Of a stretch of DNA of 64,000 nt, positions 3,411-63,700 are shown one piece after another. The position numbers and the translations under genes were made by a program. The stretch is from Macrostomum lignano (lineage: Eukaryota), in contig NIVC01000210.1 in NCBI GenBank assembly GCA_002269645.1, positions 25,469 to 89,468 of the forward strand, written 5' to 3'. Under the pieces are notes generated by a model. It had not been told where the DNA came from. It was given only the letters and a program-made list of their open reading frames with translations, and did no database searches. Position 1 is the first letter of the stretch, and every line of letters starts with the position of its first letter.

Positions 3411-3502
3411 TACTCAACAGTAGATACTCAACAGTATTATAGTTTTAGTTCATTAGTCAGAGTACTTCAATTCAGTGTGCAAGTCGATGCAGTGGAAGTC
3501 CT

Positions 3503-4393
3503 CTACCGGACCAGAATCGCCAGGTAGTCGGCAACCCGACCGTGATCTTTCCACGTAGCGTTGATACCCAAATTGTAGAGGATCGTTGGAAAAGTAGTAA
3601 AATTAAAAAACGTGCACCAATCGCTGGGGGTGTCAATGATCACCATGGAGCCAGTATCCGTCGGGCATAGCTGGGAAAATATGTTTATGAAAAAACGTCG
3701 CCTAACCAGGGAGCCAGACACGGAACCTTCGAGGCTGAATTCGTTGAACTTTTCGTTTTTCAGATTCGTTATGGGGGCCGTCTCGATAAGTCTCTGACGG
3801 GTGAACCAACTGGTCTGGTTCACTCGCTCAGCAGCGGTTCCAACATCGAACACCCATCGCATCACAACAGATGAGTTTCTGTAGACCTGCACAATGAACT
3901 GCTTGTAGACTAGGCTAGAAATCAATCGCTGCATGTCATTGAGCAGACTCGACCTGAATGCGGCGGGCAGGGTTGCAGCCTCCGGGTGAGCCGGCTGGAT
4001 CACGTAGTCGAATTCGGCAGCAACAGAATTGAACAGCTCCCAGGCTTTTTGACCGCTGCCGCTCTTGATGCTGAAGACGACGTGCTCAAGAGCGATGCGG
4101 CTAAGAGGCATTTTCAGAGTGTAGCTGCAGCTGCTTGAGCAGAGCTTGTATCGAGGGCACAGTGACGCAATCAACTGACACGACTTTCCGGAGTTCTCGA
4201 AAACTATGGCTGAAGGGTCGGTGGACATGGCAGCCGCGATTGAGCATTGCAGTTTGTCTCTGGTGACCAAGGTGGCAGTCACTGAGCAGTTCGGGTACAA
4301 GGCGTACTGCTTAAACTCAACTCTCTTAGTTGGACACGTCAGCAAAGTTGCGGCTGCACTCTGTGCCAACAGAAGCAATACAAGCAGAATCAT
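3503..4393 (-). CDS. Secreted protein, paralog 1 (signal peptide, Cys-rich possibly PAN/apple-like N-terminus, uncharacterised C-terminal domain), single exon, 296 aa
   Basis: Hydrophobic N-terminus MILLVLLLLAQSAAA; aligns over its full length with 4930-5841 and 10324-11235 (shared CPRY.LC, EH.V.S.K.G.G, AFRS.LL.DMQRLIS.L, WF..RL, RRFF.N...C..D.G.M). Confidence 0.8.
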   Translation of the reverse strand: MILLVLLLLAQSAAATLLTCPTKRVEFKQYALYPNCSVTATLVTRDKLQCSIAAAMSTDPSAIVFENSGKSCQLIASLCPRYKLCSSSCSYTLKMPLSRIALEHVVFSIKSGSGQKAWELFNSVAAEFDYVIQPAHPEAATLPAAFRSSLLNDMQRLISSLVYKQFIVQVYRNSSVVMRWVFDVGTAAERVNQTSWFTRQRLIETAPITNLKNEKFNEFSLEGSVSGSLVRRRFFINIFSQLCPTDTGSMVIIDTPSDWCTFFNFTTFPTILYNLGINATWKDHGRVADYLAILVR

Positions 4394-4929: not shown

Positions 4930-5841
4930 ATGAATAACTTTCTCCCACTAATTGTACTGCTCTATAACGTCATCTTCAATTTTCATTTTGCAACATTAAC
5001 TGCCTGTAGCTCTAAAAGGCTTCAGTACAGAAAGTATGGCTTCCTGCCCAACTGCTCCGAGTCCCTCACGCTGAGCACCGGACGCGCTCACGATTGCGTT
5101 ATGGCTGCAGCTTTGTCACCCGCCCTGTCTGCTGCGATCGTGTCTACTTCCGAGGCCGAATGTCACGTGACCACCGCCCAGTGTCCTCGCTACCTGTTGT
5201 GTTCCACTGACTGTCCCTACACCGTGCTCATTCCTGCCAGTGTGCTTAACAGCTTCGAGCACATCGTGATGAGCGTGAAGGGCGGCTGCGGTTTCAAAGT
5301 GTGGAACGTGCTGACTGGGTCGGCACTGCGCCCTGACCCTGCCGTTCAGCCAGCTCACCAAGACGCCGCCGACCTACCGGACGCCTTCCGCTCGAACGTT
5401 CTCGACGACATGCAGCGCCTGATCTCCGGCCTGACCTTCAAGCAGCTCATCGTGCAGCTGTACAAGAACTCCGCTGTGGTTGTGAGGCTCGTGTTTGAAG
5501 TCGGGACGAACTCCTCCAGTGTCAACCTGATGAACTGGTTCAGCAAGGAGCGTCTCGTACAGAGCTGGCCGGTGACCAACCTCGCCAACATGAGCACGAA
5601 CTTCTTCAGCATCAAAGGAGAAAATAGAGGCTTGTTTCAGAGACGCTTTTTTGTCAACTTTAACTATGGTGGCTGCAATAATGACCGCGGGCTCATGGCA
5701 GTCTTGGATTCCAACGATGACGATTGCGCAGCATACCAATACTCACAGCCGATTCCTCGAATCGTGTTTAGTTCGGATCCCAGTCGCACAATGGCGACGA
5801 CAATTCAGGATGCCGAACATTTTGCCATTTTGGCGCGCTAA
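4930..5841 (+). CDS. Secreted protein, paralog 2, single exon, 303 aa
   Basis: Signal-peptide-like start, GC-rich coding body, full-length similarity to paralogs 1 and 3; head-to-head with paralog 1. Confidence 0.85.
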   Translation: MNNFLPLIVLLYNVIFNFHFATLTACSSKRLQYRKYGFLPNCSESLTLSTGRAHDCVMAAALSPALSAAIVSTSEAECHVTTAQCPRYLLCSTDCPYTVLIPASVLNSFEHIVMSVKGGCGFKVWNVLTGSALRPDPAVQPAHQDAADLPDAFRSNVLDDMQRLISGLTFKQLIVQLYKNSAVVVRLVFEVGTNSSSVNLMNWFSKERLVQSWPVTNLANMSTNFFSIKGENRGLFQRRFFVNFNYGGCNNDRGLMAVLDSNDDDCAAYQYSQPIPRIVFSSDPSRTMATTIQDAEHFAILAR

Positions 5842-8501: not shown

Positions 8502-10323
8502 AAGTCCAAGCTCTGACTCATATCTACTATCAGTTCCCTTTTATATTTCCCTATTAGACAAAAGGGCAAAAGAAGATTCTCAGAATATTTGTTTGGATAG
8601 CCAATTCATCTGGATCCCATTTAGCTCCACTCTGCCACAAGTATTCCATGAGTTTATATGCTATCGTGATATGATTCCGCTATCTTCCGAACGGAAAGTT
8701 GCAAAAGTCAAAATTCCATGTCACCTACATGTAGCTCTTCCTGCCATTCACAAATCCAATTCGAGGATAGCATGGAGGATTCGAGGATAAAGCTGGACAG
8801 TCAGAAAAAATCATGCAGTTTAGATGGAATTTCTACATCTACCTCATAAATTGTATGCATTGAGAAGTCCCTTATTTAATTAAATTCTGTCAGCCATCGC
8901 AAATATGTAACAATTGTTTCCAGATTCATTTGCCAGCCCGAAAGATTATTCGGCTCAGGTATAACATTGATTTTTTCAGAGCGGGGCAGTAGTGCTTGCG
9001 CTGGTCTCTTTCCTGTATTTTCTTTTCCGCTCTCCTCATGGGCGCGCTGGATTAAGCGAGAACCGCAGCACGAAAGAAGATCTCTAACATTTTTGGTAGC
9101 TACAGCTACCAAATCCTCAGTGGCCACCCTTTGTATAACAAAGGAATGTGGAGGGCAGGTGGGTTAAGCAAAAAAAGCATTCTTGTTTTCCCACCGTGTG
9201 TCTGGGCTTCAATGCAGCGAAGTCAAGCAGGTCCAACATGTTCAATGAGGAGGTCCAAAGCTTGGATGAAAAAAATCGATATTACTCGGCTCTGCATGAT
9301 ACAATATCGATTTTTTCAGAGCGGGTGGCTGCAGTAGTGTTTGCCCCGATCTCTTTCCGGCCTTATCTTCTCTCTTTTCTCCTCGTGGGTACCCTGGAGA
9401 GAGCGTCTCCAGCATTTTTCAGCAGTTATCCAGACAGCACAGCTTCAGTGTAGTGGATTTTTTACCTTTGTCAGAAGCCAGGTCTTGAGACAAGAATTTG
9501 GCCTCCAGGGTCTTCAGGTGCATACGCGTAGAATATTTTGAGTTTCTATAGAAGCCTTCTAATTTCAGCAAAGTTACTGTAAATTTAAAGTGCCATGAAA
9601 TTTATTTATTAGCTACCTTGTACAGTTGATTCAATGTAGTTAATTCGGCATTTTAATTTCGACTTGGGACAGAACTTTTGCATGCACTGGAGCTCCTTCG
9701 GGCAACTGGCACTTGGAGTTCTACGAGCTAATTAGACTCGTGCTGTTTATAATATAAATTTACTGAGACAGCTAGGAACATTTTTATGATACCTTATTTT
9801 TTAGGACGGACAGGACCATGTGCTGATGTTGAATTACGTTGGGCAGCATAAGAGATAAAATACTTCTAATCCTTCTTTAGGAACAATGAACATGGAATTA
9901 ATCGGATTATGGTGGCAGGGGAAAATTCTCTTAAGTATTATGTTGGAAGATATTCGAGCTCATTCGAAACCCGCATACTACCGATATCTGTAGTAATAAC
10001 GAATATAGAATCCACGCAATTACGAAGGAAGCGAATTATTCCCCATTATGCTTACCACTTGTCTACCCAATCAAGTAACCCGAATTGAAGCAGGAGTTGA
10101 TGAGCAGGTTGCAGCAGCCGGAGGCTTTTTGTTAGATTTCCTCATTCGCTGCGTCAATCTTCGCCAATGAATGCCAAGGCATCACAGGAGAGTCTACTGA
10201 TACAGATAAATACCAAAGTCCACAGTAAGCTACAACATCCCGCGTTTTCGCTCCCACAGCGGCAAAAAGAACGATTTCTGCATGTAAAGCTTTGCTGTTT
10301 TGCTTATCTATTCAGAAATAAAA

Positions 10324-11235
10324 ATGGGAACTCTACGTCTCATAACGCTAGTATTATATGCGATCGTGAGTACATTCTCTTCGAAAGTGATTGCTGATTG
10401 CACCCATAAGCAATTGCAGTACAAGCGACACGCATTTCGTCCGAACTGCTCTGACCTGATGACGCTGAGCACAGGAAGTGCTCAAGATTGCGTTATGGCT
10501 GCAGCTGTGTCTCCCGTCCAGTCTGCCGCGGTCGTGTCTACTTCCGAAGCCGAATGTCACGTGACCACCGCCCAGTGTCCTCGCTACCTGCTATGCTCCA
10601 CCGACTGTCCCTACACTGTGCTCATGCCTGCCAGTGTACTCAACAGCCTCGAGCACATCGTGATGAGCGTGAAGGGCGGCTGTGGTTACAAGATATGGGA
10701 CGTGCTGACTGGGTCGGCATTGCCACCTGACCCTGTTGTCCAGCTGGCCCCTCCCAGCGCAGCTGCCCTGCCGAACGTCTTCCGCTCGAGCGTGCTGGAC
10801 GACATGCAGCGCCTGATCTCCGGTCTGACCTTCAAGCATCTCATCGTGCAGCTGTACAAGAGCTCCACCGTGGTTGTGAGGCTTGTGTTCGATGTCCGGA
10901 CGAACTCCGCCAGTGTCAACCTGACGAACTGGTTCAGAAAGGAGCGTCTCGTACAGAACTTGCCGGTCACCAACCTCGCCAACATAAGCACGAACTTCTT
11001 CAGCATCGAGGGCGCCACTGACTATACAAACTTGAGAAGATTTTTCATTAACTATAGCTACGGCGGATGCGACATTGACAAAGGGTTTATGGCTATTCTA
11101 GATTCGAAAAATGATGTTTGCTCCATGTACCAGTTTTCAGAGCCGATTCCTCGCATTGTCTTCAGTTCAGATCCGACAAAGTCGATGGCCTCAACACTTC
11201 AAATTGCCGACTACATGGCTATTCTAGTGCGCTAG
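10324..11235 (+). CDS. Secreted protein, paralog 3, single exon, 303 aa from ATG 10324
   Basis: The ORF track starts at TTG 10300; ATG 10324 gives MGTLRLITLVLYAIVSTFS (signal-like) and the same length as paralog 2; centre nearly identical to paralog 2. Confidence 0.85.
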   Translation: MGTLRLITLVLYAIVSTFSSKVIADCTHKQLQYKRHAFRPNCSDLMTLSTGSAQDCVMAAAVSPVQSAAVVSTSEAECHVTTAQCPRYLLCSTDCPYTVLMPASVLNSLEHIVMSVKGGCGYKIWDVLTGSALPPDPVVQLAPPSAAALPNVFRSSVLDDMQRLISGLTFKHLIVQLYKSSTVVVRLVFDVRTNSASVNLTNWFRKERLVQNLPVTNLANISTNFFSIEGATDYTNLRRFFINYSYGGCDIDKGFMAILDSKNDVCSMYQFSEPIPRIVFSSDPTKSMASTLQIADYMAILVR

Positions 11236-43996: not shown

Positions 43997-46539
43997 ATGA
44001 ACGATTTTGGTTCAGGTAAGGTTGAAAGCAAGTTAATCCCCAAATTTAAGTAAAACAGGCCTGCTTTGAAGCTTTTTAAAATTTTTTATGGAATTTCGAT
44101 TCAAATTGAAACAATACGTGCGCCCGTTCTTGCATAGTTCTAATTAGGAGAGTAGCGGAGCTGGAATTAGTTTGAGGGTTCATCAACGCAAATTGGCCTG
44201 TCCAAAGCTGTCTTGCGATTCCCATGGCTTATGACGGCCAACCAAGTCTCAAGGGACAGGGTAAAGGTCGGGGATGCCCGACGATGGGAATAGCGGCGTT
44301 TTTGCGTCATTTATGTGTTTAGGGTTTTTTATTGAACCAAGCAAGATTAGCAGTTTAAATATTGAGGGTTTCATTGACACTATAGCAAAATGACAAAATA
44401 AAAAAGTGCATTTTGGTCATTTTTGTAGACTGTACTTGGTTTTGGTTGATTTTTTATACATGAGCCCAAAACCCAACGCCTGGCCCTCTGCAATGAGCAA
44501 ATCATCTCAAGGTTTCAATGTTGTTCCTATATTTTATACTTCTGATTTGCAGAGGTTGCTGAGGAGCTGCTATGCCCCGTGTGCTTGGACCCCTACAACG
44601 ACCCCGTATATGTGTGCATCCATCACCATAGCCTGTGCCGCGAATGCTACCAAATGATTGTTTCGACAGCTGGCAGTGACATCCCGCAGTGTCCGCAGTG
44701 CCGAGAGAAATTGACCAGACCCGTTGATAATACTCAACTGCGCCGTCTGGTGGAGGCTCACCAACAGCAATCTCAGCAGGCGGTCCAATGCCAGGACTCT
44801 TCCTCTGGCGGCATCTGTGCTCGGCGTAGTGCTGAGCGATGCGGGCACTGCGAGCAGAGCTTCTGCGCGCAGCACTTCATCGCTCATAAAGAGCAGTTTC
44901 AAGTGCGTATGAAATTCACTGTTTCTTTATTGTTTTTTAAGGTTCTCGCTCTGAAGATTAATTTTTAGGTTCTTAAATGCGATCACTGATTTCAGACCGA
45001 TTGCGTTGAGCTTTTGTCGGCTGCAGATGAAGCAGCTCAGCAGTCAGAGAGTCGACAAAGAGTGCTAACCGAATGGGAAGTCTTTATTCAAAGCTGTGTA
45101 GCGCATCTGATTGAGAATTCGAGACTGCAGCGATTAATTCCCGAATCCTGGCTCGACGATGCATCCCGGAGGCACGCCGAAGATTTACGAAGCACCCTCA
45201 ACGCCGGTGACCTGCGGGCAGCCAGAGTTGCCTATGATGAACTCAGGATGGCCAAAGCGAGATTCGACCAGCAAGGACCGCCTCGCGAGATCGTTGGAGA
45301 GTTCAGCCGAGATGCGTTGTTCTCTCTGTTTCAAGAGAAGCTTTCAGCTCTGCTGACCGCAGCCGAACAGGTGTACCTTGACGGCATCTACGGCTTGGTC
45401 GAACGCGTTTGCCACATTGGAATTTCCACAGTCAAGCTGAAGATTGGGAAAGAGATTCAGAAAATTCCGGAGCTCAAATGCCGGCTTAGTTTCGTCCTGC
45501 CCGGTCGAGGCAGTCACTTCACTCCCTATGTTGACCTCAAAGCCATTCGTGCCGAGCAATTTGAAAGGGACATTCTGATTCGTTTCGATTTCCAGCAGCA
45601 GTTCGACTACAGCACCATCAGTATGTCGAACGGTCCGGCCGTTTTAGCACAGTTTCTGCAGAGAGGACCGATTGAACTGCCGTTTTGTCTTCAGATGAAG
45701 TTTAAGGAGAGGCTGGCCTCCGGGGTGGCTGAAAATACCTACTGCAGCAGAATGTATCAACTCGCAGCTTTGCTGCCACTGGCGGAGGCGATCAGTCGTG
45801 GGGAGAGCATCGAAAACGTGGAGTGTCCTTGTGAGATTCTGAATAAGAAGTACACTTTAAATTACCTTTGTCTACTGAGTCATGACCCTGTTATTTAAAC
45901 TACAAAAGCTTTTAGTGATAAAATGCACCAAAAACTCGCGAAACTAACTTTTCTGGTTTCTTAGAAAATATTTGGATTCTGGGCTTGCGCAAAAATGCAA
46001 TGCTGTCAAGCTGAAATAGGAAATAGCTTCTCTTCAACACAAATGATAATAATATTCGTTTTTGTAGAAGCAGATTTATAGTAAACTTTTCTGCTGGTTA
46101 GATCAGAGGTATTTGGAAAGAGTACTTAATTGTTCAAAATCAATAGTTTTTTGCTTTATGAACTAATTAGATAGAAATTGACTTTTACAACTGTAATGCG
46201 CATACAAAATCAAGGATTTACAGAAGTTGCCCTGTCTGTCTAATGAGTGTCTGACTGGTGGAACTTAACATTGAAAACGTGAGCTCCTAGCTCGACCGTA
46301 AAGACCAGCTGACGCAGTGCAATTAGCCAGTCGTTGGAAGCCGGTTCCGGCTTCTTCTGAGATTGAATCTCCAAGAATCAGCCTTAATTGGTCTTCCCGC
46401 AGTGCTGGATGAAAATGAGGCACCTCGCGGATATGTCACGGTGTCCACCAACCTGCCGTGTCTGCTGAACCAAGTCTACCGGGAGCTGCCGGCTGAGGAG
46501 CAAAGCGAAGTTGAATTGAGGCTTCGAGGAGAAGAGTAA
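43997..46539 (+). CDS. Chimeric TRIM-like gene 7: RING + B-box-like + coiled coil + RPGRIP1L RID-type C2 domain, ~446 aa
   Basis: Exons 43997-44015 (phase 1), 44553-44902, 44996-45830 (phase 1, donor CCTT|GTGAG), 46403-46539. C-terminus (VCHIGISTVKL, SFVLPG, IRFDFQQQFDYS, PIELPFCL, ISRGESIE..P | RGYVTVSTNLPCLLNQVYRELP) aligns with the RID copies at 47.6-57.9 kb. Confidence 0.8.
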
Positions 46540-47621: not shown

Positions 47622-50600
47622 TTAAAAGTCAGGTGGTGAGTCACCTTTTGAGAGATGAAAGCATAAAATTAAGTCTTTCAGACTCAAAAAATATCACTGC
47701 ATTCCATACTCACTTTTAACGTGATGAAGCAGCCGTGGCAGGCTGGTTTCAATCGCGATGCTGCCAATCTTCTTCTCGTTTTGAATGACTGAAATGAAAA
47801 CGTTGATTGAATCTGGGGTGATTAACAGTAAAATACATTTTTTCTTTGTTGGATTGTGTTTTAAATGGTGTTTTTTTTATTAGATTAGAGGCAGGGGGGT
47901 TGTGTGCACCCTGGCGCACTTTAAGCGACATAGGCACACAACCGGCGAGAGGCATTACTGCCCATTCCGCCGACTCCCCTGAGCAGGCATACAAGCACGC
48001 GGATACGTACGCAGGCACACACTCACACAGGAGTGTACAGCGGCCCTAACTTTATATTAATCGTTAGGCATGTACACTTCACGGCGCCTTGGGGGGTTGG
48101 CTCTCAAGGCCGTTAATTGCACGAGCAGAGCCAAGCCGAGATTCCAATTCAGCCCCAAATTAATGTGACTGCACTTGGAATCGAGCCTGGGTCGCTGGCA
48201 CACCAGAGCAGCTGCGCTACCGCTGGGCTACGGCCCCCGTTAAATGGTGTTTTAGAAATCGAACAAACTCGGAGAAGAAGTATAGCTCGTAGATCTATTT
48301 TTACCGTTACAGAAAATAACAAAAATTAAATATAAATATTAAATATTAAATATAAAAACTGACACTCTGCGGAACCTTTGTGAGAATTCTATTTATCGGT
48401 TGATTTTTTATAATTCGGCTAAAGTAACTTGGTCACTCATTTAGTAGTCAATATATGATCCACTACACAAAACTTTAATGCCTTATAAAAGACCCACGAA
48501 ACATTTCAACGTCTGTAGACCCCACGTCGATGTACGTCGCAGGCAATTGGGTATTTTGACGTTACGCCGAAGGACAATGACATCATGCGTAGGTCAGAAT
48601 TCGATGTAATGTATTAAATGTACAAATCTGCCCCCCAACATAGATGGACGTCGAAAACGTCTGCTGACCTAAATGACTTCAAATTGCAGACGGGAGAGAG
48701 AAATCTCTAAATCTCACGTGGAAACTCGTTCCAGATACAGCGGTCCTGTTCGATACTGGGTTGCAGGCCAACTCTAGCCTCGCACAAGTCGCCGGCTGCC
48801 TTACAAGCCAGCGTGAATCGAAGCTCGACTGGATCAGCCAGTAGCAAGCTGGTTAGCTGCTTCCTCATTCCTTCTTCTGAGTAATCGAAGCGCCATATAT
48901 AGTCGAAGTTTAGGCGATAATCTCCAGGCTGAGACCACCCGGGTCTGGGGATGAGCACGCTGGGCGTGTGCGTATCCTCAGAGTCGGAATAGCCAGGTAG
49001 ATTGAAGTAAACATAGCAGAATTGGTTGTTAAGTTTGGGATTTTCTAAGACCTCACTGTTCTCCATTAGATGCACAGTTGATATGGCGATGTCGCAGTGC
49101 CTCGAAACACTTTTCACTGTGAATGGTTTTTGTGTTTATGCTTTTTCTAGAATTCGAAGCGTTTACAAGGGTTAAAAGTCGAAAATACTTACTCCTATAA
49201 TTCAGATGACTTCTGATGCTGATAGGTACAAATCTAAGTAGAGATTTTGGTAGCTCACGGCCGATCTCCAGTAGCAAGCTGGGCAAATCCGTGCTGATTT
49301 TGATGCTGCCCACCTGCTCGGTCTTCGCCATTACTAAAAGTTTTTGATAAAATTCATTACAAAATCCGAAATTCATATTTACCGTATACGCTTAACCAAG
49401 AAAAAAGCAAGTTTACACGTACCAGGAAATCTCTCGTCTCTAACATCTACATGTACTTCACGTCTTAAGTAATCATCGAGTTTTATGATAGTCCTGCCCA
49501 ATTCAGTCTTAACGAAAGAGCTTGCCAAGTTTGGTGATTTGCAAAATACTTTGAACGCGATCTGCAGGTTTCCCTCGAGAATCGACTTGGCCAGCATCAG
49601 GCGGTTTTGGTAGTTGCCTGTCATGCTGTAGTCGTAAGTCTTTTCAAAATTGAAAGCAAGAAGGAACCCGTTTTTCGGAGATTGCACCGAATTCAGGACT
49701 GGTCTCAAAAGAGACGTCATTGTTTCTTGAAGCTTGAAGCCGACTAGGTCAAATGCTACGTAGCACTTTCCCTTGCCAAGCTGTGAATTTGTCAAGACTT
49801 CAGATGAGCCGTTCAGTTGCACGTCAGCTATTCGCACAGTGCAGTTCTCAACGAAGGCTTCATCGAATTTGCGAATAGGCTGATTATTACCTGTAATCGA
49901 AAGGTACATGTCTGTCGTATCTATGGGAATGCATAGTTGTAAATATGAAGACTCATTTATTTAATAGTTAAAAATACAAGGATAGTTCGACATTGTCTCA
50001 CCCTCGGCTTCATTTTCCTCAGCAGTAGGTTTTTGGACGTCCTCAAACGAGTCTAACCGTTTCCTGATCGAAATTAGCAGACTCGGCAGGCTCATGCTGA
50101 TTTTGATGCTGCCAACTTTATTACCGTTTGACAGTACTAAAGTTACAAGGGATATGTTTGTTGCGACAACAATTCGGACACTATCAGCATGTGATGGTAA
50201 AAGCCACCTAGCTTTTTAACAGACAGTAGACAGTTTTTTAAACTCGTGAAACTTGACTGAAATCTGCATTGCTTGCATACTAAGAACTCAGATTAATGCC
50301 ATACGATGATCGATGCTATCATATAACACTGGGACTACTGAAACAAAGGGAAAACCACCGTTGGACTAGTGCCTGTTAATAATAGCTAAGAATTATATCA
50401 TTAAAAGTTATTCCTATCTTTATTGTGCTACTCGGGTAAACGGATGACACATTTTGAGTCTCCCCAAGCCACTGACTGTCTATCTACCGATCTAAAAAAA
50501 CTCACGTGGAAAGCTTTGTTTTCGAATATCCTCGCCTCGAGCAACAAACTCGTCCATTTTGACAGTCGCCTTGCCAAGATCCATGTAGAATTCACTCTCT

Positions 50601-53600
50601 GAGTCAGACGGCTCGCAAGCTACCACGAACGGAATCTCGATGCACTTTTGTCTTAAAAGCAGCATAGTTAATATTTTGCTCTTGCTTGCGCTGCTGTAGT
50701 CGTAGACTCCTTGGAAATTGTAGCTGAGGCAGAACTCCTCAGGTCGCGACCGGCCCGGCCTGGGCGTCGGCACAGATCCGGGCGTTTCCGTCTCCTCGCT
50801 TCGGAAACTGGGTAGCGAGAAGAGCACGGAGCACTTGGTGTTGTCGAGTTCTGGCTTCCTCAAAACATCGCTTGTTTCACTGAGCTCCACATTGAATATC
50901 TGGACTTTACAGGTTTCCATAGTGAATGAAACTAAACCTAGTAGCTTTTTTAAGTCGTTCTAATTCTGTCTGGCATCATTTAAATAGCAAGTTCGCAAAC
51001 TGCAACTTCAGCAGAACTTCGGAATCTAAGAGGGAAGCTGAAGTTCTTAGGTAAAAATTGTCCACCTCAATGAACTCCCACTTTGTCTGAGTAATTTGGG
51101 CTCTGGAATAATATTAGCAAAAAATGAAGTCAGAGATCTTCTACGTGCTGCAAAAGCCAATCTTCCTTTGTGCGAAAGAGAGTTAGAAATTGTCAGAAAA
51201 GTGGATGCGCTGCACACATCTTTGAGTACGTCATTGTGCATAATAAAATGGCAGCACTAAAATTAGCAGCTTACCCAAATGAAGTTCGCTTGATATTTTC
51301 TATTTATCTACCAAAATATAAAAATAAAAACGCTGAAACAATATCTAATTCATAATATAATCAGAATATAATTCTGAATTAGAAATAAAAACAAAAATTG
51401 CAAACTTATTCACTAAGAATCTACGATACACACACCGTAAAACATAACAAACGAGATTCTGTATAGATGTACATGTTAGTACAGGAAATTTAATTTAGAA
51501 ATAACCTGATGCATCAGTTACACAACCAATGAGCATATGCTTACATGTAAAGTTGAGCAAAATATTAGTAGCATGTACAGCTGATTCTAACGAGCGCACT
51601 GTTTTGATTTTAGCTCTCATAACTTTTTTAGCAGAATTTCAAACCACTTGGGCACTTTGAAATTGATAAGCTTTCTAGCTCTTTAAAAAAGTTATTGACT
51701 TTTTTTTACCCTCTGGTATTTCATCGCAGATTTCCCGCAGCAGACTGGGCAAGTTGGTGCTAATCGTGATGCTGCCAACAACTTCATCTCCGTTCAGTAC
51801 TGAAATAATAAAAAACGGCGTGTCTGGTGAACGACGCGTCTACTCGACATGTTCACTCAAAGCCCATTATACTGACATTTAAGCACGCACAAACATGAAA
51901 ACAATCATAAAATCATCAACTCAATCATGAAATTATCAACTCAATCATGAATCATCAACTCAATCATGATATCATCAACTCAATTATGAATCATCAATGT
52001 AATCATGAGATCATCAACTCAATCATGAATCATCAACTCAATCAGGAAATAATCAACTCAATAACGAAATCATCAACTCAATCAATGAATCATCAGTGTA
52101 ATCATGAGATCATCAACGCAATCATTAAATCATCAACGCAATCATTAAATAAACAACTCAATCATGAGATCATCAACTCAATCATGAGATCATCAACTCA
52201 ATCATGAATCATCAGCTGAATCTGGAAACAATCAACTCAATAACGAAATCATCAAAGCAATCAATGAATCATCAGTGTAATCATGAGATCATCAATGCAA
52301 TCAATAAATCATCAACTCAATCCATAAAATCAACAACTCATTTTTGAAATAATCAACTCAATCATGAGATCATCAACGCAATCGTGAAATCATCAAATCA
52401 ATCAATGAATCATCAATGTAAGCATAAATTCATCACCGCAATCATTAAGTCATCAACTCAATCATGAAATCATCAGCTCAATCAATGAATCATTGACTCG
52501 ATCATGAACTCCTGAACTCATGAATTTGATTATCATCAAAAGCGTGGATCATTCAAAATTAAGACCACAAAAGAACATCAAAAGTTAGCTAGGATAAAAA
52601 ATTAAAGCGAATAAACTAATTAATTAACATGTCTTGAAAAAACCTACACGGAAAGCTCTCGTCTTGAATGTCCTTGCCATCAGACACACGATCTTCGAGC
52701 TTGACGACCGCAGTGCCAAAATCCAAGAAGAACTCGCTATCCTGATCCTCCGCCTCGCACACCAAGGTGAACGGAAGTTCAACTGGACTCGCCATTAACA
52801 GAGTGGCAAGCTGGATCCGCTTATTGTAATTTGTATCGTAGCTGTAGTCAAATCTCTTCTGGAAGTTAAACCGAAGATGGAAATCTTTTGCCTTGGTCCG
52901 GCCTGGTCTTGGTGTTGGTAGCGAGAGAGAAGTCTCCGTTTCGTCCATATCAAAACCAGGTAGATCGAAGGACACAAAGCTGTTGGTGTTGTCGAGCTCG
53001 GGATTCTGTAGAGCTCGGCAAGATTGCTCTAGCTGGACACTCGATATACAAACTGTACACATCTCGCGCGAGTCTGCTTTAGAAGTCGACTGAGTCCTCC
53101 GACTGAGTGCTGAAGTTTGTTTCAGGTTTCAAACTCTTATTGAGAGTGTCTTTACGAGAAAATGACGAATAAATACAGAGTAAAATGGCAACAATAAAGC
53201 TTAAATTCTCACAGTCTTTATTATGATCATCGGCAGCTGGATTCGTTTCTATGCAAACGGCGAGCAGTAAGCTGGGCATACTTGTGCTCAGTTTTATCGT
53301 GCCAACTTGCTCTTTGTAGTAGGAAAGCACTAAAATATAAAACATCCGATTGATAGTACGCTCGTAGTTAAGGAACTGATTTCAATTGATTACCTACCGG
53401 TATTTTAAAAATATAACATTCTCAACCCGCACCAGGAAAGCTTTCCTTTTGGACGTCGTCCTTTCGAGCAATTCTATTATCGAGTCTGACAACGGCTCGG
53501 CCCAGATTAACTTCACTTTGCGATTCGTCCGGCAGGCACATCAAGGTAAAATTGACATCAGCATGATACCGGCTGAGCATATCATCCAGAGCCTGCCGCT

Positions 53601-53841
53601 TGCCTCTGCTCGAATAGTCGTATGAACTTTCGTAATCGAATTTCAAGACCAGATCCTGGCGTGTGGACGCTCCTGGTTTTCGGGTCGGCAGGATGGCGGG
53701 GGTCCTGGTGACCTCCAGCTTATAGCTTGGCAGATCGAAAAGCACGTAGAACTTTGAACTTCTCAGATTCAATCCTGCCAAATCAGGGCAAGTCTGGTCG
53801 AGCCGGACGCTGAATATTTTCACCAAGCAGCTTGATTCCAT
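47622..53841 (-). CDS. Multi-RID gene: five tandem RPGRIP1L-derived C2 (RID-type) domains, ~914 aa
   Basis: Exons 53841-53433, 53329-53213, 53109-52648, 51799-51710, 50931-50506, 50136-50002, 49890-49423, 49333-49193, 49116-48718, 47788-47714, 47644-47622; all ten introns GT-AG and phase 1; total 2745 nt with no internal stop. Confidence 0.7.
47920..48240 (-). mobile_element. tRNA-derived SINE family 2, copy 1 (intronic)
   Basis: Minus-strand head GGGCCGTAGCCCAGCGG (A-box) ... GGCTCGATTCC (B-box-like); body shared with 59860-60100. Confidence 0.7.
51895..52530. repeat. Degenerate ~20-bp tandem repeat (ATCATGAAATCATCAACTCA-like)
   Basis: Directly visible; lies within predicted intron 52647-51800; explains the MNHQ-repeat ORF. 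Confidence 0.9.
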
Positions 53842-54708: not shown

Positions 54709-55464
54709 TGTAGCCTAGTGGGTTGTAGCCTAGTGGGTTGTAGCCTAGTGGGTTGTAGCCTAGTGGGTTGTAGCCTAGTGGGTTGTAGCCTAGTGGGTTG
54801 TAGCCTAGTGGGTTGTAGCCTAGTGGGTTGTAGCCTAGTGGGTTGTAGCCTAGTGGGTTGTAGCCTAGTGGGTTGTAGCCTAGTGGGTTGTAGCCTAGTG
54901 GGTTGTAGCCTAGTGGGTTGTAGCCTAGTGGGTTGTAGCCTAGTGGGTTGTAGCCTAGTGGGTTGTAGCCTAGTGGGTTGTAGCCTAGTGGGTTGTAGCC
55001 TAGTGGGTTGTAGCCTAGTGGGTTGTAGCCTAGTGGGTTTTAGCCTAGTGGGTTGTAGCCTAGTGGGTTGTAGCCTAGTGGGTTTTAGCCTAGTGGGTTG
55101 TAGCCTAGTGGGTTGTAGCCTAGTGGGTTGTAGCCTAGTGGGTTGTAGCCTAGTGGGTTGTAGCCTAGTGGGTTGTAGCCTAGTGGGTTGTAGCCTAGTG
55201 GGTTGTAGCCTAGTGGATTGTAGCCTAGTGGGTTGTAGCCTAGTGGGTTGTAGCCTAGTGGGTTGTAGCCTAGTGGGTTGTAGCCTAGTGGGTTGTAGCC
55301 TAGTGGGTTGTAGCCTAGTGGGTTGTAGCCTAGTGGGTTGTAGCCTAGTGGGTTGTAGCCTAGTGGGTTGTAGCCTAGTGGGTTGTAGCCTAGTGGGTTG
55401 TAGCCTAGTGGGTTGTAGCCTAGTGGGTTGTAGCCTAGTGGGTTGTAGCCTAGTGGGTTGTAGC
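54709..55464. repeat. 15-bp minisatellite (GGTTGTAGCCTAGTG)n, ~50 copies
   Basis: Directly visible; unit matches the 5' end/A-box of SINE family 1. Confidence 0.98.
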
Positions 55465-56647: not shown

Positions 56648-59600
56648 TTAGTTAACGAATCTGACGGCAGACTTTTTCGCGTCCGGGAGTTCGTTGTAGA
56701 CCTCCAGTAGCAGGCTCGGCAGGTTCATGCTGATTTTGATGCTGCCCACTTGTTCATCGTTCAGCATTACTAAAATTGTTAGAAGACACATGGCATGATT
56801 AATGTGAGGTTTGGATTAGTCAAACTTTTTTATTTACCAAATATTGAAAAAAATATAATTACATATTACTACTAATGATAATAATTGATTAAACCTGCCC
56901 AAAGGGTATTACGTGGCGCATCTGAAGGCTGCGTACGGCTGTTCAGTCCAAGGACTGGGGGGTCGCCAGATAGCCTCAATTACCCCAGCTAATGCTGGCA
57001 CCCATTTTACAGCTGGGTGAACTGAAGCAATGCAGAGTTAAGTGTCTTGCTCAACGACACAAATTGTTCTGAGAGGGTCCAAAATCAAACAACCGACCTT
57101 TCAGTCGCTTGTCCAACGCTCTGTAACCACTAAGGCTACAACAAGTATTTGTGAAAGTGTATTTCAAATAATCCTACTCGAGTTTTCACCCGAGTCAACT
57201 GGAACTCACGAGGAAAGATCTCTTCTCGAATGTCCTCGCCTTGAGCGATTCGATCGTCCAAATTGACCATCGTTTTGCCCAGATCCACGAAAAATTCGCT
57301 CTCTGGATCAGACGGCTCGCACACCACAGTAAACGGGATCTCAATACTCTTCTGTCCCAATAGCAGCATCGCCAGTACTTTGCGCTTCTCGTAGCTGCCG
57401 GCGAAACTGTAGTCGTAGACTCTCTGAAAGTTGTAACTGAGGCAGAACTCATTGGGTCGGGACTGGCCGGGCCTGGGCGTCCAGAGAGACACTGGCGTCT
57501 CCGTCTCCTCCTGCGAGAAGCCAGGCAAGAGGAAGAACACGTAGCACTTGGTGTCATCGAGGTCGGGATTTCTTAAAGCCTGGCAGGTCTCGCTAAATTG
57601 CACGTTGAATATCTGGACTGTGCAGGCTTCCATTGAAGCACGACCAGTAGCTGTCAGCATCAGCTGCTGGCGGAGCTCGTCCCCGTGGCTACTCTCCGTC
57701 ACCACGCCATCGGATTCCTCCGCCTCCGGTGCCGGACGCTCTGTGTCCTCGTAGTCGTCCTCATACTCAACCTCCTCCACTTCGTCTTCCGGTTCCGCCT
57801 CGGCAACGTCGTAATCGTCGTCTCGCAGACTGACGGACTGCAGATGCGAAGCGACGCCGCTTCTACCAACGCTTGGACCTGAAGAATTCGTGGAGTTTAG
57901 AATTCGCTTGGAGCTTGGAACTATTGGTTTAGTCTTTATCTTCTGCAACCTGCTTATTCGTTTTTTAGACAAGCCCTGGGTCAGGGTCATTGACAATGCC
58001 GAACTCACCTAACGATGTATTTCTCACGTCCTGCGTATCCGTGATGCTAGTTACGCTGTCGGTGACGGATGCTAAAGTGATGAAACCAGTTAGGAAAATT
58101 TTAGCAGCCTTGTTTTAGCCAGAAATAGTACTAACAGTAGGTTGATTAAACATGCATAGGCCTACCATCCATGAGGGTGCTGACCCGAGTCTGGCTCGCC
58201 TGCGTATCGCCAGCGCCACCGCTGCCGCCGATGCCAAGCCGACGCTCTGCCGCGGCAGCGGCTAAAGCAGCGGCCGACGGCGCGTGCCGTTTCGGCGGTT
58301 GCGGCGTCTGAGACACCTGCGGCTGAATTTGGAGTTGGGATTCAAAAATACAGCTAGCTAAAAAATAAACTTCAGTAAATTTTTTATTATCTTATCAACA
58401 CTACCAACCTGATTGTCCCCAGTCAGAGATCCCGACCGACTGCCAGTTCGTGCACTCGGTCGTGGCGACGACGATCCCGACGCTGAATTCGGTGCTACAG
58501 CCGACGCTGTTGGCGATGGACCATGGCTGCTTCCGCTGGCACTTCCTGTGCCTCGGCGCGGGGTTCTCGGCTGCTGAACTGGCTGTGGCTGCGGCTGCTG
58601 GGGCTGAGGTCGCTGCTGCGTGCTTCTCGCTGATCCGGTGTCGGATCCCAAGGCCACCGCCGCGCTGCGATCAAGAGTAGAGTCATACCCAGGTTCCCGA
58701 CGGTGCTTCAACTGCGGCTTGTCTCTCAGCAGTTCAGCTTCGCCAGTCATCAGTGGCAGAGGCTCGGCAGGTCCGTCCCAATGACCAGCTGGATTGTACG
58801 CAAACTGCCAGCTGAGCTCAAGCTCCAGAGTGCCGTTCGGCTGCTGATCAGCTCCGAGTAGTTGGTAGATGCCCTGCACAGCCCGGTTCTGGCTTAAGGA
58901 CACTAGATCGATCTACATGGGGATACGAGTAGATAGGGGATTAGTAATGGGGTAAATCGGTAAGAATAAGAATCTTTTGGGTCTTGAATATGCGAGAAAT
59001 ATGAAAAGTTCAGCCATGGCTGTTAAAACGTGTCTAAATCCTTATTGAAAACAATGAATGACATCCAAGTCACCTTAGCAACGCCTAGGTAGGCGCTTTC
59101 AAGAGGATCGTCTTCGTCCAGCACCCAGACGACGAGCTTCTGCGTCTTCAAATAGCGATCCAACTCTGGGGTCGGCGTCAGAGTCAGCTGCTGGTAGAAT
59201 TGGAACTCTGGATCGCTCGAGTTTGGGATGGCGGGCGAAACAGTGTCCTCACAGTCGAAGAACTTGTAGGAGCAGTACGGCGTCGGCTGGAAGTCCGGTC
59301 GGCGAGCTTTCAAGCCTCGACAGCGGACGATCTTCACGCCCAGAGTGTTGGCACCGCCGGCTGCGCGACGATTCTGCGCCAGGTCGTCGAGAGCTTTCAG
59401 GCCCTCCGCGGCCGCTTGGTGATTGGCGGACATGTAGCCCAGAGCCTTGGCGCGCTCCCGGTAGAGCCGCATCGCCTGCTCCATGGGCACCCGCATCCGC
59501 ATCCAGTAGTCCAGGCAGCCCACCACCGTGCCTCCGTCCACCGACACCAGCTGAGCTCGGCCGGACACCGGGGCGGTCGGTTTCGAGTCGAGCAGCTCGC

Positions 59601-62600
59601 GGAAGTAAAGTCGACAAGCGGCCACTTGATGATAAGTGACGCCTACTGAGTGGTAGAGCTCCAGCCGTGCCTGTTGTGGGGCAGATTACGCTTCCAGTAG
59701 AATACGAGCAGAGAGAGTCTAAATGTATTTCCGATGAGTTTTTACTAAACAAGTTTCCGAAAATTAAAGGGGCTCATCAAGCGGTGGTTCGGCGGTGAAG
59801 GTAATTCTGTCCACTTCGCTGACTTCTGAGCACATCAAAGCTACAAGCGCGCCAATACTGTACGCAGGCACGCACTCATACACGTACGCTCACACAGGAT
59901 GTACAGCGGCCTTGACTTTCTAAGGCATGTACACTCTCTGTGCTTTGGGGGGGTTGGTTCTCATTGGTGTGAATTGCACGACAACCCACGGGAAAATTTT
60001 CGAGCACACAAGCCCCAAATGGATGTCGCCACGCACGGAAGCAAACCAGGGGTTGAGTCGCAGGAGTCAGCAGCGTTTCCCTCTGAGCTACTATGCTTCT
60101 TAATCCGCTTAGTATCACAAAGAGCTGATCAAATGACCAACAACACGTGTACATTACCTTTTCCTTGTTTATGTAGTGCAGGAACGAATCGTCAACCTTC
60201 ACCACGTACTGCACGGTCTTGTTGAACTCGGCCACTCCGCCAGCTGCGCGCAGCACATCGGTGGTCTGCAACTCGCACACATAGAACGGCCAGGTGCAAA
60301 ACAGGGACGGATTCGAGTCGCCACCGAGCAGCTGGATTCCTTCATCTGTCAGGGTTAGACGGCCAACGTGCAGCTCGACGAGATTTTCGCCGTTTTGCAG
60401 GTGCACAGTTTCGTCGATTTCGTCCACTCCGTCGGCCTCTTCGCTTTGAAGCTGGTTTTGCTGGTCGAGCAGAGCGAATTGCTTGGTGCCTGCAATGATA
60501 GCCCGGGGTGTCAAATAAGCTGTGCTGAACTACAGAAACGTCTTTTTTGCGATTGAGCATTAAACGTCTGTTGTGCCAGGCTTCTAAGCAATCCGAAGAA
60601 AAGGTAGGGTACACTCAGTACTGAAAGTTCTTGTAAGGGACTAGACAGCACTCTCGATAGCTTGAGTACGGCTTTATAAATCTCGTTTAGATCCAGCACT
60701 GAGAGTGAGCATAATTAATTGTTTTATCGTCTTGATCGCGACATGAATCATTTGTCCAGATCCCTTAAACCGTTGAAGGCTAAGAACTCTTCTTAAAAAA
60801 ACTGCTTTCTCATCGCAACACCGGTAGAGACACTCACCATAGGCAACGTCTCTGAGCTGTCGCTCCAGTTTTCGAATTCTTGCAGCTCGAATGTCGAGTA
60901 GCTTGGCCGATTCGGCCATCTTGGCGTCGTGATCCGCTTTCATCGCTTCTAGGCGACGCTCCGTCAACGACAGGCTGGCCTTCAGGTCCTGATTGATGCG
61001 ATACTGAGCCTCCAGTAGCTGCCGTGTCTTGTCAAGCTCTTGGATCGTGTCCGAGTGGGCGGCTTCGATCTCGCGTAGGCGTCGCTGGTTGTCCTTTGAA
61101 ACCTCAGCGTCCACTTGATGTAGGAAGTCTAGCTCAGATGGTTGCTGCTGCTGGCGCCGCTGCTTCACCAGCACGATGGCCTCTTCAACTTCGTCCAAGT
61201 CCACAGCACCCTCCTGCAGTTTTCGTCGTCGGAGAAATGTTCGAACCCGTTTGAATTTATAGAAGGACCCACTTTCGATTTAAAATGGAATGTCAAGATA
61301 GGACTTGCTAGCGCAGTCTCTTATCACTGTATTAACTATTTATAATCAAATCCAGTTGTGCGTTTAGCCCCAGTTGGTCTCAAAAGTGTTTTTCTTTGAT
61401 TAAAAAAGTCTATTGAGAATTACGAGTGTCAAATCAAAAAAAAATTCTACAAGCTACAGTGTGTTTTTTCTAAACTGTTTGCTCTCATCAGAAAAGCTAA
61501 TCACCGGGATGAGCAGGACTTCCTCACCGCCGGAGATAAGAATAATGTTACCAGTAGGGCTGCGGCTACTCTAACGCAAAGCCTCCGTTGACATTGTAAC
61601 ACAAACACGGAATGAATTTGGTCGCGTACGGAAACGAACCAGGGATGGTGACGTGGTCAGAAGCGTCTTACCATTGAGCTTCTCTTTTCTCTCACCGCTG
61701 ATTGTGGGACAACGTCGCCAAATGCGTAGCATCAAGTGGCCTACAACCTTATTGCAAATATGCTTTTACGAGCGTAGGTATGTGTCCTAAATATAAAATT
61801 GCAAACTTGCAAAACAAATGCATACTTGTATCAGCTTTACAAGCATCGTGGAATTCAATAGAATGATAAATAAGTTCTGAAATATCTAACGAAAATCCCA
61901 ATATGCCTTAAATATCCAGCACTAACCTTGTTAATAAACTTCATTTTTTCTCGCAGGCTCTCATGCTTCTGCTGCAACTCGTAAAATTTGATTCTCAGAT
62001 TGCTCAGCTCTTTTTCAACTTCTTCGCCTTTGTTCCGTTCGTCCTCCAATCGGTCGAGGAACTCGCCTTTCTCGCCGACGTCTCGGTGCATTGTGGCCTC
62101 CAGCTGCTGAATCTGCGTCATCAGGGCCAGCTCGCGAGCTTTCCACTGACGCTCGCGCTCGGTGTCGAAAGCGCTGCAAAGTTCAGTAGAAGTTGCAAGC
62201 TGCAAGGGCATCTGATTTGTGAATGATTTGAAAAGCTATCCACCCCCTAGTTGTGCAATGGACGACAAAAGGACTCAAAGACAAGGCTCCTGAGCAAGTC
62301 CGTCTCTTTGTCTTTAACTTTATCAAGCTTTATAATTTTGATATGTTTGTTATGCTTGAATCACAAACAAACATAACAAAAATAACATTGGGTCTGCATT
62401 CTATCATATACAGATTCATATCTTTCTTCTCAAGTAGTCCTTGAAATCAACATCGTTCAAATCGGATAGTTGCTCAATTTGGAATCGAAAGTGTTATTTT
62501 GTCTGTAAAAAACTGGAGAAAGTTCACATCTTTCAAATGCAATTCGTATTTATCAAGCAAAATTTCCCATATTTTAAAGATTTTGCGATTGTGCGGTAGC

Positions 62601-63700
62601 TGTTTGAAATGCGACTAAAATATAGGCAGCTCTGACCTGTTTGTCAGCTTCTCGTTGGCTTCTCGCAGAATATTCGCCTCCTTGTTGGCGTCCTCAAGCG
62701 CGTGCTCCAGCTCCATCAGTCGCCGTCTGGTTGCCTGCGCCGATCCGGCGCTCTCCTTCATGCTCTCGCCTCGCGCTCTCGAGCTCTCAGCTCACGCTTC
62801 ATCCGCTCCAACTCCTCTAGGAAGCCGCGAGTTCGTCTCCACTGTCTCGCGCATCCGCTCCTCGTGCTGCTCGCAGCGCGCCTGCAGCTGCTCAATGATG
62901 GCGGACTTTTCGCGTAGCTCACGTTGTAGGCGAACCTTGTCGAGATCTTCCTGCATGGCTGAGCGCTTGTCTGTGCCGGCCTGCATGCGAGCCAAGTCCA
63001 ACTCCGACTGAAGGTCCTGCGTCAGTTTTTTGACAGTTGAACGAATCGGTAATTGTCCTAATAAAATTTGAATAGCCTATAGATACAAGTCAAAAGTAAT
63101 TGCGTAATTGGTTTTTCTTTCCGTGTTAAATAAAATGGCTCGCTATCCTACGTGAAGTACTCAAATGATGCTGTCACTACAAAATGACTTCAATTCAAAT
63201 TTTAACAAATCAGTATTGAAAGAGCTAGTATAATAAAAATTATTAGTACTTTCTTGTCTTAATTTTCTGTCTCACCTGTATCCGCCTCTGGTGCTCCATC
63301 TCCTGAGCGTACAACTTGTCCTTGAGTGCATCCAACTCAGATTCCAGGCGCTCGTTAGCCATCTGCAGCTGGGTTCGCTCGTTGCGCATATCTTCTGAGC
63401 GTCCCAGGCTGCGCTGACGCTGATCCCGCTGCATCTGCATCGACTGTTGCTGCTGCTGCGGTGGCTGGTAAAGGACTCGCGTGTTGGGACCTCCGCGGGG
63501 CCGCGCTCGACCGCTGGCAGTCCGAGTCTCTCTGACCAGCGTTGCCGCCACCCGGCTTCGCCTGCTGCAGGAGCGACAGCCGCTGCCGCAGGTTCTCAGT
63601 CTGCTTCTCCAGCTCGGCATTGCGCAGCTCAAGTTTCACCACCTGATCGGTGGCGCGCAGCTCCGCGGCGCTGGCGCCGTTTTGCACTTTTAGGGCGCGA
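56648..63700 (-). CDS. RPGRIP1L: RPGRIP1L / Fantom (MKS5) ortholog, 5'-incomplete
   Basis: Exons ~63690-63276, 63016-62637, 62173-61927, 61213-60838, 60489-60158, 59670-59074, 58912-58409, 58316-58166, 58071-58009, 57878-57210, 56769-56648. Recognisable motifs: LLDIRAARIRKLERQLRDVAYG; C2N (GENLVELHV, FCTWPFY, QYVVKVDDSFLHY); DYWMRMRVPMEQAMRLYRERAKALGY; C2C (PYCSYKFFD); RID (EETETPVSL). Apparent indels in the two 5'-most exons. Confidence 0.93.
56872..57143 (-). mobile_element. SINE family 1, copy 4 (last intron of RPGRIP1L)
   Basis: Minus strand TTGAGCAAGACACTTAACTCTGCATTGCTTCAGTTCACCCAGCTGTAAAATGGG; head GTTGTAGCCTTAGTGG. Confidence 0.8.
59860..60100 (-). mobile_element. SINE family 2, copy 2 (diverged, RPGRIP1L intron)
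   Basis: CACACAGGATGTACAGCGGCC...AGGCATGTACAC...GGGGGGTTGG...AATTGCACGA is colinear with 48020-48125. Confidence 0.65.
61600..61690 (-). mobile_element. Degenerate tRNA-like SINE head
   Basis: Minus strand AGCTCAATGG (A-box-like) ... GGTTCGTTTCC (B-box-like); single copy in the window. Confidence 0.35.

Follow-up and report, generated by a model that had tools for sequence, protein, structure and literature searches.

Does a terminal exon pair of RPGRIP1L that was copied in tandem next to its source form one gene, several genes, or only the remains of a gene? This question is raised by a window of 64,000 nucleotides (nt), the whole stretch of DNA analyzed here, which is identical in sequence to part of contig NIVC01000210.1 (locus L002) of the Macrostomum lignano assembly GCA_002269645.1. 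On its minus strand, 2.8 kb 3' of a complete RPGRIP1L paralogue, lie five diverged modules of the RID domain (Pfam RPGR1_C). The same locus is found on four contigs (L001-L004), mutually 96-99% identical. The original prediction had interpreted the modules as a single gene encoding five tandem RIDs, built by serial duplication of the last two RPGRIP1L exons. Our analysis bears out the modules and their origin, and leads us to favor, tentatively, two genes at this place: one with two RIDs (modules 1-2) and one with three (modules 3-5).

Translated from 54.0 to 47.5 kb, the minus strand shows five long open stretches, and behind each of them a short one that fits the pattern VLxxxxxVGSIKISxxLPSLL (V or L at the start). 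Every large exon ends in F-P plus one base followed by GT, in phase 1, and all large-to-small and small-to-large junctions are in phase 1. All earlier statements on the sequence of the five diverged copies of the terminal exon pair hold, and the array as such is far beyond chance expectation. Module 1 is composed of a large exon (exon 1, 53433..53841, minus strand, as are all exons below), whose ATG at 53841 (GCCATGG) lies 7 nt past a TTACAG acceptor and is the coding start of the public protein PAA87952.1, and which ends in a phase-1 donor, and of a small exon (exon 2, 53213..53329) that has lost the ancestral stop and carries the phase-1 donor ACT/GTGAGA. In module 2, a large exon with a phase-1 CTTCAG acceptor (exon 3, 52648..53109) is followed by a small exon annotated at 51675..51799 (exon 4), with the tail EIPEGKKKSITFLKS and the stop TAG at 51677-51675; the original prediction instead placed a donor after 51710 (AGG/GTAAAA; exon 51799-51710). 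The large exon of module 3 (exon 5, 50506..50931) has a TTTAG acceptor at 50932 and a conserved methionine, ATG, at 50920 (ACTATGG). Its small exon (exon 6, 50002..50136) has the phase-1 donor AGG/GTGAGA, and reading through that donor leads to a stop at ~49965, which overlaps an AATAAA.

Module 4 begins with a TTACAG acceptor (exon 7, 49423..49890) and ends with exon 8 (49193..49333; phase-1 donor GGA/GTAAGT), whose tail ELPKSLLRFV... extends beyond the ancestral stop position. This module has lost the TPRPG motif. Module 5 consists of exon 9 (48718..49116), which lacks a start codon where the domain begins, and exon 10 (47694..47788), which either uses the phase-1 donor AAA/GTGAGT after 47714 or is read through to a TGA at 47696-47694. 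In the former case a short terminal exon 11 is possible (47622..47644, encoding ...SDSPPDF and a stop), 3' of which an AATAAA is located at 47470-47465. A methionine at the domain start is retained in modules 1-3, while in modules 4 and 5 the acceptors are followed by no in-frame ATG. Joining the exons through the four inter-domain junctions that had been proposed (53213/53109, 51710/50931, 50002/49890 and 49193/49116) reproduced the claimed stop-free model: with the extra splice 47714/47644, the 11 exons give exactly 2745 nt and 914 amino acids with a single terminal stop, and the 10-exon version, which reads through exon 10, gives a frame of 913 amino acids. This stop-free joining of all exons is weaker evidence than the modules themselves.

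The domain identity of the modules was evaluated with Pfam and with structure prediction. The concatenated model matched RPGR1_C (PF18111) with an E value of 2.7e-41, and RPGR1_C was the only domain that Pfam found in the 913-amino-acid model, in line with the earlier statement that the coiled coils and the other two C2 domains of RPGRIP1L are absent. Scored singly against a gathering score of 22.9 bits, modules 1-4 reached 31.2, 43.6, 44.8 and 32.7 bits, and the parent 59.2 bits; module 5 alone, which falls below the gathering score, had no RPGR1_C match at E<=0.01. A profile of the modules matched the structure of the human RPGRIP1 RID, 4QAM_B, with an E value of 1.4e-10. AlphaFold models were made for modules 4 and 5, the two most aberrant ones, from alignments that held only 7 paralogous sequences. 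Module 4 was modeled with a predicted local distance difference test score (pLDDT) of 83.6 and module 5 with one of 82.8, and for both the top Foldseek match was 4QAM_B, with template modeling (TM) scores of 0.70 and 0.78, respectively. Both models have the C2-type beta-sandwich and the C-terminal helix of 4QAM_B. In both, the last beta-strand and the C-terminal helix come from the small exon, so that each exon pair makes up one complete domain. The five modules, the parental RID and the RID of a second RPGRIP1L paralogue (P0002) have 21 invariant core positions in common.

The source of the modules adjoins them. An RPGRIP1L paralogue of the P0001 type occupies 56648..63699 on the minus strand, as determined by tblastn with P0001, by the sequence and by Pfam; its open reading frames, between 63.7 and 57.2 kb, correspond to P0001, an RPGRIP1L-type protein of M. 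lignano with coiled coils, C2-C2_1, C2 and RPGR1_C. The presence of this full gene immediately upstream on the same strand upholds the proposed origin of the modules from the 3' end of RPGRIP1L. The large exon of the parental RID ends in EEIFP plus C/GTGAGT at 57211 (phase-1 donor CTC/GTGAGT), and the terminal exon, 56769-56648, encodes LMLNDEQVGSIKISMNLPSLLLEVYNELPDAKKSAVRFVN, ending in ...ELPDAKKSAVRFVN and the stop TAA. Because the terminal exon contains no phase-1 GT, RPGRIP1L itself does not continue into the array. The exon before the RID exon of the parent likewise has its 3' boundary in phase 1, which makes that RID exon symmetric (1-1). No RID array was found within 10 kb of the P0002 gene (locus L005); the array is therefore specific to the P0001-type paralogue. 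By its sequence, the array is a partial paralogue of RPGRIP1L. The coiled coils, the C2-C2_1 domain (PF11618) and the central C2 domain that precede the RID in RPGRIP1/RPGRIP1L orthologues are not present in it; its products, containing RIDs only, cannot be RPGRIP1L orthologues, and RPGRIP1L-like anchoring is not expected of them. In a neighbor-joining tree of the modules, only the pairing of module 3 with the parent was supported (78% bootstrap), and the tree does not resolve the order of the other duplications.

Two side observations concern the RPGRIP1L copies. A third group of M. lignano RPGRIP1L-like proteins with a C-terminal RID (P0008, P0077 and P0078; ~1016 amino acids; Mlig022890 and Mlig033584) is encoded on other contigs, so that the family has expanded in M. 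lignano beyond the genome duplication. In the RPGRIP1L exons compared, L003 and the window differ at one position at most (a gap, in the 59676-59056 segment), and their RID arrays differ by 1-3%, with 8 synonymous changes in module 1 alone. A near-identical RPGRIP1L next to a diverged array indicates that the locus copies are mosaics, formed by recombination or gene conversion between haplotypes or homeologues.

How long have the modules been maintained? Between modules, the proportion of synonymous differences (pS) was 0.71-0.85, where 0.75 is the random expectation, and is thus saturated; the proportion of non-synonymous differences (pN) was 0.34-0.51, including the pairs 3-4, 3-5 and 4-5, which are not annotated. 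For module 3 and the parent, the synonymous distance (dS) was 0.98 and the non-synonymous distance (dN) 0.20. Saturated synonymous sites together with low non-synonymous divergence imply that the duplications are old, preceding the genome duplication, and that for the greater part of its history each module remained coding. Such selection, purifying over the long term and acting on all five modules, rules out random pseudo-exons. Furthermore, the modules of all four copies are free of stop codons, the 19 splice dinucleotides are all conserved and the ten exons are intact.

The public annotation already covers the first two modules. By exact look-up, exons 1, 2, 3 and 4, the last through to its TAG, are PAA87952.1 (BOX15_Mlig026271g2, 370 amino acids), listed as UniProt A0A267GRP1 under the name 'RPGRIP1 C-terminal domain-containing protein' and having sister entries for the other three locus copies. 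Two UniProt models from an earlier assembly, A0A1I8J8Y7 (331 amino acids) and A0A1I8GPY1 (325 amino acids), omit exon 2, with exon 1 spliced directly to exon 3, and have the same stop. All three public model types, from two sources, hence stop inside exon 4, the second small exon. The public models already make use of junction 53213/53109 and of the phase-1 acceptor at exon 3. Skipping of exon 2 would remove the last strand and the helix of module 1, and is either a real isoform or a gene-prediction artefact. What is already known is therefore the two-RID protein; new are the RID-only architecture, its origin from the neighboring gene and three unannotated modules. The reference annotation of M. 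lignano probably has a gap at these three intact RID modules. A literature search for Mlig026271, Mlig004133 and Mlig024872 returned no papers naming these genes.

The splice signals divide the array at the same place at which the public models stop. The original prediction held that each small exon has its own phase-1 donor. All five proposed donors are indeed in phase 1, but four follow GT[GA]AG (exon 2, GTGAGA; exon 6, GTGAGA; exon 8, GTAAGT; exon 10, GTGAGT), in keeping with the M. lignano donor consensus GT[G/A]AG (PMC8629364), and the fifth, in exon 4, does not. We estimate the chance of a consensus donor in the right phase within a tail of 20-30 codons at ~4-6% per exon, and the donors of exons 2, 6, 8 and 10 are therefore very likely real. 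In modules 1, 3 and 4, the frame continues beyond the ancestral stop position before the donor, and the spacers to the next module are 103, 111 and 76 nt, too short for a promoter. From module 2 to module 3 the spacer is 778 nt. The sole candidate donor of exon 4, GTAAAA, is formed by the Gly-Lys codons of the tail EIPEGKKKSITFLKS, and this tail with its stop aligns with the parental tail ELPDAKKSAVRFVN and its stop, as well as with the P0002 tail, the stop coming one codon later than in the parent. Homology of the tail in spite of saturated neutral sites indicates that the exon 4 tail is translated. The M. lignano spliced leader ends in ATG (PMC8629364), which by our own reading would be out of frame for modules 4 and 5. 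As these two modules also have no start of their own, their long-term preservation implies translation in a fused 3-4-5 protein. Trans-splicing of the spliced leader and operons with spacers below 1 kb are common in M. lignano, with operon spacers of ~100 bp typical and the spliced-leader acceptor YTNCAG close to the ATG (PMC8629364). The exon 1 acceptor was described above; that of exon 5 is TTTAG, located 11 nt before the ATG, and ~745 nt separate it from the stop in exon 4. Candidate poly(A) signals after exon 4 (ATTAAA), exon 6 (AATAAA) and exon 10/11 (AATAAA) are not decisive.

Whether exon 4 is also spliced to exon 5, always or as a substantial isoform, decides between the two genes and the 913/914-amino-acid five-RID protein of the original prediction, which we consider doubtful. 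Of the single-gene claim, the joining of modules 1 and 2 in the public 370-amino-acid model and the open frame stand; what does not stand with it are the public stop in exon 4, the GTAAAA donor, the long spacer, the lack of any protein with modules 3-5 and the relaxed recent constraint on these modules. A single gene would fit junctions that are all in phase 1 with the frame open over 2745 nt, a GT and an AG conserved in all four copies, a spacer fixed at 778 nt in every copy, and the lack of a canonical AATAAA before 47470 besides those within introns or exons. Part of this fit is inexpensive, since a phase-compatible GT...AG pair at the 51710/50931 junction is expected by chance about 1 time in 3 (our estimate). 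Exon 4 is moreover the only small exon without GT[GA]AG, its tail past the suggested donor has retained homology with that of the parent, implying translation, and recent constraint differs between modules 1-2 and modules 3-5. Several findings nevertheless weigh against the division into two genes. The six resolved introns of M. lignano RPGRIP1L include genuine donors as weak as GTTGGT and GTGACT, so motif strength alone cannot reject GTAAAA, and the only poly(A)-type hexamer in the interval from exon 4 to exon 5 is an ATTAAA at 51494 instead of the canonical AATAAA. Modules 3-5 have no gene call in any of the four loci, and no protein containing them was found by a HMMER search with the RID profile among 1.84 billion cluster representatives. 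A word-indexed search of a collection of 5.8 billion proteins with the 550-amino-acid product of modules 3-5 likewise gave no match; the same kind of search with the 913-amino-acid model returned only the two RPGRIP1L paralogues and missed the 370-amino-acid protein, which is identical to the first 359 residues of that query, and its silence is therefore not used as evidence by itself. Exact look-up of nine alternative products (the 913-amino-acid protein, single-module read-throughs, modules 3-5, modules 4-5 and exons 1-6 among them) found none in the collection. Two other partitions of the array have still less in their favor. Use of the modules by RPGRIP1L as alternative RID cassettes for its C-terminus, its phase-1 donor before the RID splicing to exons 3, 5, 7 or 9, is very unlikely: the phases of that donor and of the module acceptors agree, but no such product occurs in any collection searched, introns of 5-9 kb would be needed where 76-930 nt are observed, and exon 1 has an ATG of its own as well as an acceptor whose phase does not fit. 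Least credible of all are five single-domain genes, or an operon of five single-domain cistrons. The methionine kept at the domain start of modules 1-3, the AATAAA overlapping the exon 6 read-through stop and the typical ~100 bp length of M. lignano operon spacers would agree with them; they are contradicted by public models that join modules 1 and 2, by an exon 2 read-through stop that falls inside exon 3, and by modules 4 and 5, which lack an in-frame ATG after their acceptors and for which a spliced-leader ATG is out of frame.

A further alternative is that only the two-RID gene is alive, modules 3-5 being once-coding, now silent relics in early decay. We counted recent substitutions among three distinct haplotype/homeologue sequences and compared them with a mutation spectrum derived from introns. 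Modules 1-2 had 18 synonymous and 11 non-synonymous substitutions (omega, or dN/dS, ~0.20; p<1e-4 vs neutrality), and the RPGRIP1L control (L002 vs L001) had 13 and 4 (omega ~0.11; p = 2e-5). For modules 3-5, the counts were 8 synonymous and 17 non-synonymous (omega ~0.69), which is indistinguishable from neutrality (p = 0.26), an omega of 0.2 being rejected for these modules (p = 0.002), and the two groups of modules differ in recent constraint (Fisher p = 0.033). Variation in exons 5-10 was 1.7%, similar to the ~1.2% of neighboring, cleanly aligned introns. The exons of modules 3-5 contain three indels. Two are deletions of 6 nt that leave the frame unchanged; the third, in codon 8 of exon 7, removes 1 nt and is common to L003 and L004, contigs NIVC01004714.1 and NIVC01002920.1, two of the four copies. 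The recent pattern in modules 3-5 speaks against a living three-RID gene, and decay would also account for the lack of modules 3-5 in both public annotations, for the missing TPRPG motif of module 4 and for the failure of module 5 in Pfam. Still, we regard silent relics as unlikely. Not one stop codon has accumulated in the modules of the four copies, and no splice site has been lost. Of the exon indels, two out of three keep the frame; the third breaks the modeled exon 6/7 frame, by our reading a CAG acceptor 11 nt downstream would restore it, and the deletion is possibly an assembly error. Both modeled modules, 4 and 5, give confident RID folds. Finally, the power of the comparison is low: with only 25 substitutions in modules 3-5, weak selection and none are inseparable. 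Modules 3-5 are at present less constrained than modules 1-2. The earlier suggestion of purifying selection accordingly holds over the long term for all modules and in recent time for modules 1-2, and it does not extend to the recent history of modules 3-5.

The two-gene reading suggests the following course of events. Ancient tandem duplications would have placed five copies of the 3' module of RPGRIP1L at a distance of 2.8 kb downstream of the parent. This module comprises the RID beta-sandwich portion of the penultimate exon and the small terminal exon for the last strand and the C-terminal helix. With phase 1 on both sides of the parental RID exon and at the beginning of the terminal exon, copies arranged in tandem were frame-compatible from the start. 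Concatenation would then need only the loss of the stop and the gain of a phase-1 GT in the small exon, and, judging from the anatomy of the exons, this happened in small exons 1, 3, 4 and 5, while module 2 would have kept the ancestral tail and stop. One product would be the annotated 370-amino-acid two-RID protein, Mlig026271, and the other an unannotated three-RID protein of ~551 amino acids starting at the conserved methionine of module 3. The three-RID gene may have its own promoter, or may be a downstream cistron that is trans-spliced to the spliced leader. We infer the expression of modules 3-5, as we do the protein functions. If so, the locus shows how a multi-domain gene arises, through tandem duplication of a phase-1-bounded terminal exon pair and its joining by stop loss and donor gain.

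What could proteins made of RIDs alone do? The coiled coils, C2-C2_1 and C2 domains place RPGRIP1L at the ciliary transition zone, and the ligands of the vertebrate RID are the RCC1-like domain of RPGR and the proteasome subunit PSMD2. The binding of the RPGRIP1 RID to the RPGR RCC1-like domain is represented by PDB 4QAM. The isolated RID of mouse Rpgrip1l binds Psmd2, and its expression alone increases the proteasome activity of the ciliary base, also in cells null for Rpgrip1l (PMC4494006), which indicates that a free RID can act in trans. Free proteins with two or three RIDs would bind RID ligands away from the transition zone. Their most likely function would be that of soluble bi- or trivalent binders of RID partners, acting as adaptors or competitors; the multivalent RID scaffold or competitor suggested in the original prediction is a putative role. 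A bolder and rather improbable extension is that the RID has become a free-standing multivalent family, clustered by the parent gene. Its members would be the two-RID protein, the protein with three RIDs (or an isoform with five) and, encoded next to the array, an E3 ligase of TRIM-like RING/coiled-coil/RID make-up, which together could titrate or re-target RPGR and the 19S subunit PSMD2 away from the transition zone. If true, the RID family would be a lineage-specific regulator of cilium-associated proteolysis. RID-only proteins in a heavily ciliated animal that is tractable to transgenesis would in any case amount to a natural experiment on the RID apart from its anchoring at the transition zone. 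The reach of these results is moderate, for the finding is specific to one lineage, the databases already contain half of it and the function is putative.

The M. lignano modules share the domain family and the fold of the RPGRIP1/RPGRIP1L RID (PF18111; 4QAM chain B), and the split into a large and a small exon with a phase-1 boundary is common to the array and the neighboring parent RPGRIP1L. Unlike in RPGRIP1/RPGRIP1L, the RID of the array stands alone and repeated, without coiled coils, C2-C2_1 or C2, and its ligand binding is putative. Tandem RIDs also occur in the haptophyte Prymnesium parvum, where KAL1530447.1 (2984 amino acids) has 10-11 RPGR1_C domains. These form the tail of a full RPGRIP1-like protein (coiled coil, C2-C2_1, C2), in contrast to the RID-only gene of M. 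lignano, and the repeats are nearly identical and hence recent, whereas the M. lignano modules are old and diverged. Two protist-like proteins in ENA, P0013 and P0030, have 5 and 4 matched RPGR1_C stretches, respectively. Among the 72 matches, the only multi-RID proteins assigned to animals are the M. lignano Mlig026271 models, which correspond to modules 1-2 of the window and stop after module 2, modules 3-5 being present in no public protein.

Beyond the array, the next gene in all four loci encodes a 446-amino-acid protein on the opposite strand. In the window this convergent neighbor is PAA87951.1 (BOX15_Mlig013276; 44549-46536, plus strand), with a RING finger, a second Cys/His-rich, zinc-binding region, a coiled coil and a RID. 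Its RID is a further, seventh instance of the two-exon module and is likewise split in phase 1 (CP/LL...): the large exon extends to 45829 (...VECP), the small exon lies at 46402-46536, and the domain is ~26-32% identical to the other RIDs. Unlike the RID-only array, it is fused to the TRIM-like parts, and from its sequence it looks like a RID that was exon-shuffled onto a putative E3 ligase. A family of genes with a RING-finger exon and a coiled-coil exon takes up much of the window, at 13.3-14.4 kb (minus), 23.46-23.83 kb (plus), 26.5-27.5 kb (plus), 37.3-39.6 kb (minus) and 41.1-42.4 kb (minus). These tandem genes are 29-43% identical to the N-terminal half of the 446-amino-acid protein and have weak Sina_RING and zf-C3HC4 matches; none has a RID.

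The repeats of the array are confined to predicted introns, as had been noted, and no exon is touched by one. A satellite with a 20-bp unit (51902..52520) lies inside intron 3, the length of which varies among the genome copies (848, 636 and 530 nt). An insert of 379 bp resembling a short interspersed nuclear element (SINE) is located in intron 9 (47875..48253, minus strand) and is flanked by a 14-bp target-site duplication, AAAACACCATTTAA. It is present in L001 and L002, while the site is empty in L003 and L004, so that the insertion is recent, after the divergence of the locus copies. ARAGORN called no transfer RNA (tRNA) in the insert, and its tRNA-like head is our own reading.

Elsewhere in the window, a near-perfect satellite with the 15-bp unit TGTAGCCTAGTGGGT (50 copies, 99% matches) occupies 54709-55464, between RPGRIP1L and the array, and differs in length among the locus copies. 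Three paralogous single-exon open reading frames of ~300 amino acids are found at 3503-4393 (minus), 4930-5841 (plus) and 10300-11235 (plus). They have a hydrophobic N-terminus, conserved cysteines, the motif ...CPRY(K/L)LCS(S/T)(S/D)CPYT... and no Pfam match, and may represent a lineage-specific family of secreted proteins. Near the start of the window, two long microsatellite arrays of the 6-/9-bp type are situated at 448-1257 and 2688-3417. A GC-rich stretch at 17.8-19.5 kb (minus) contains retroelement remnants, with fragmentary open reading frames for an integrase core (rve, E 2.6e-9) and RT_RNaseH (E 3.6e-6).

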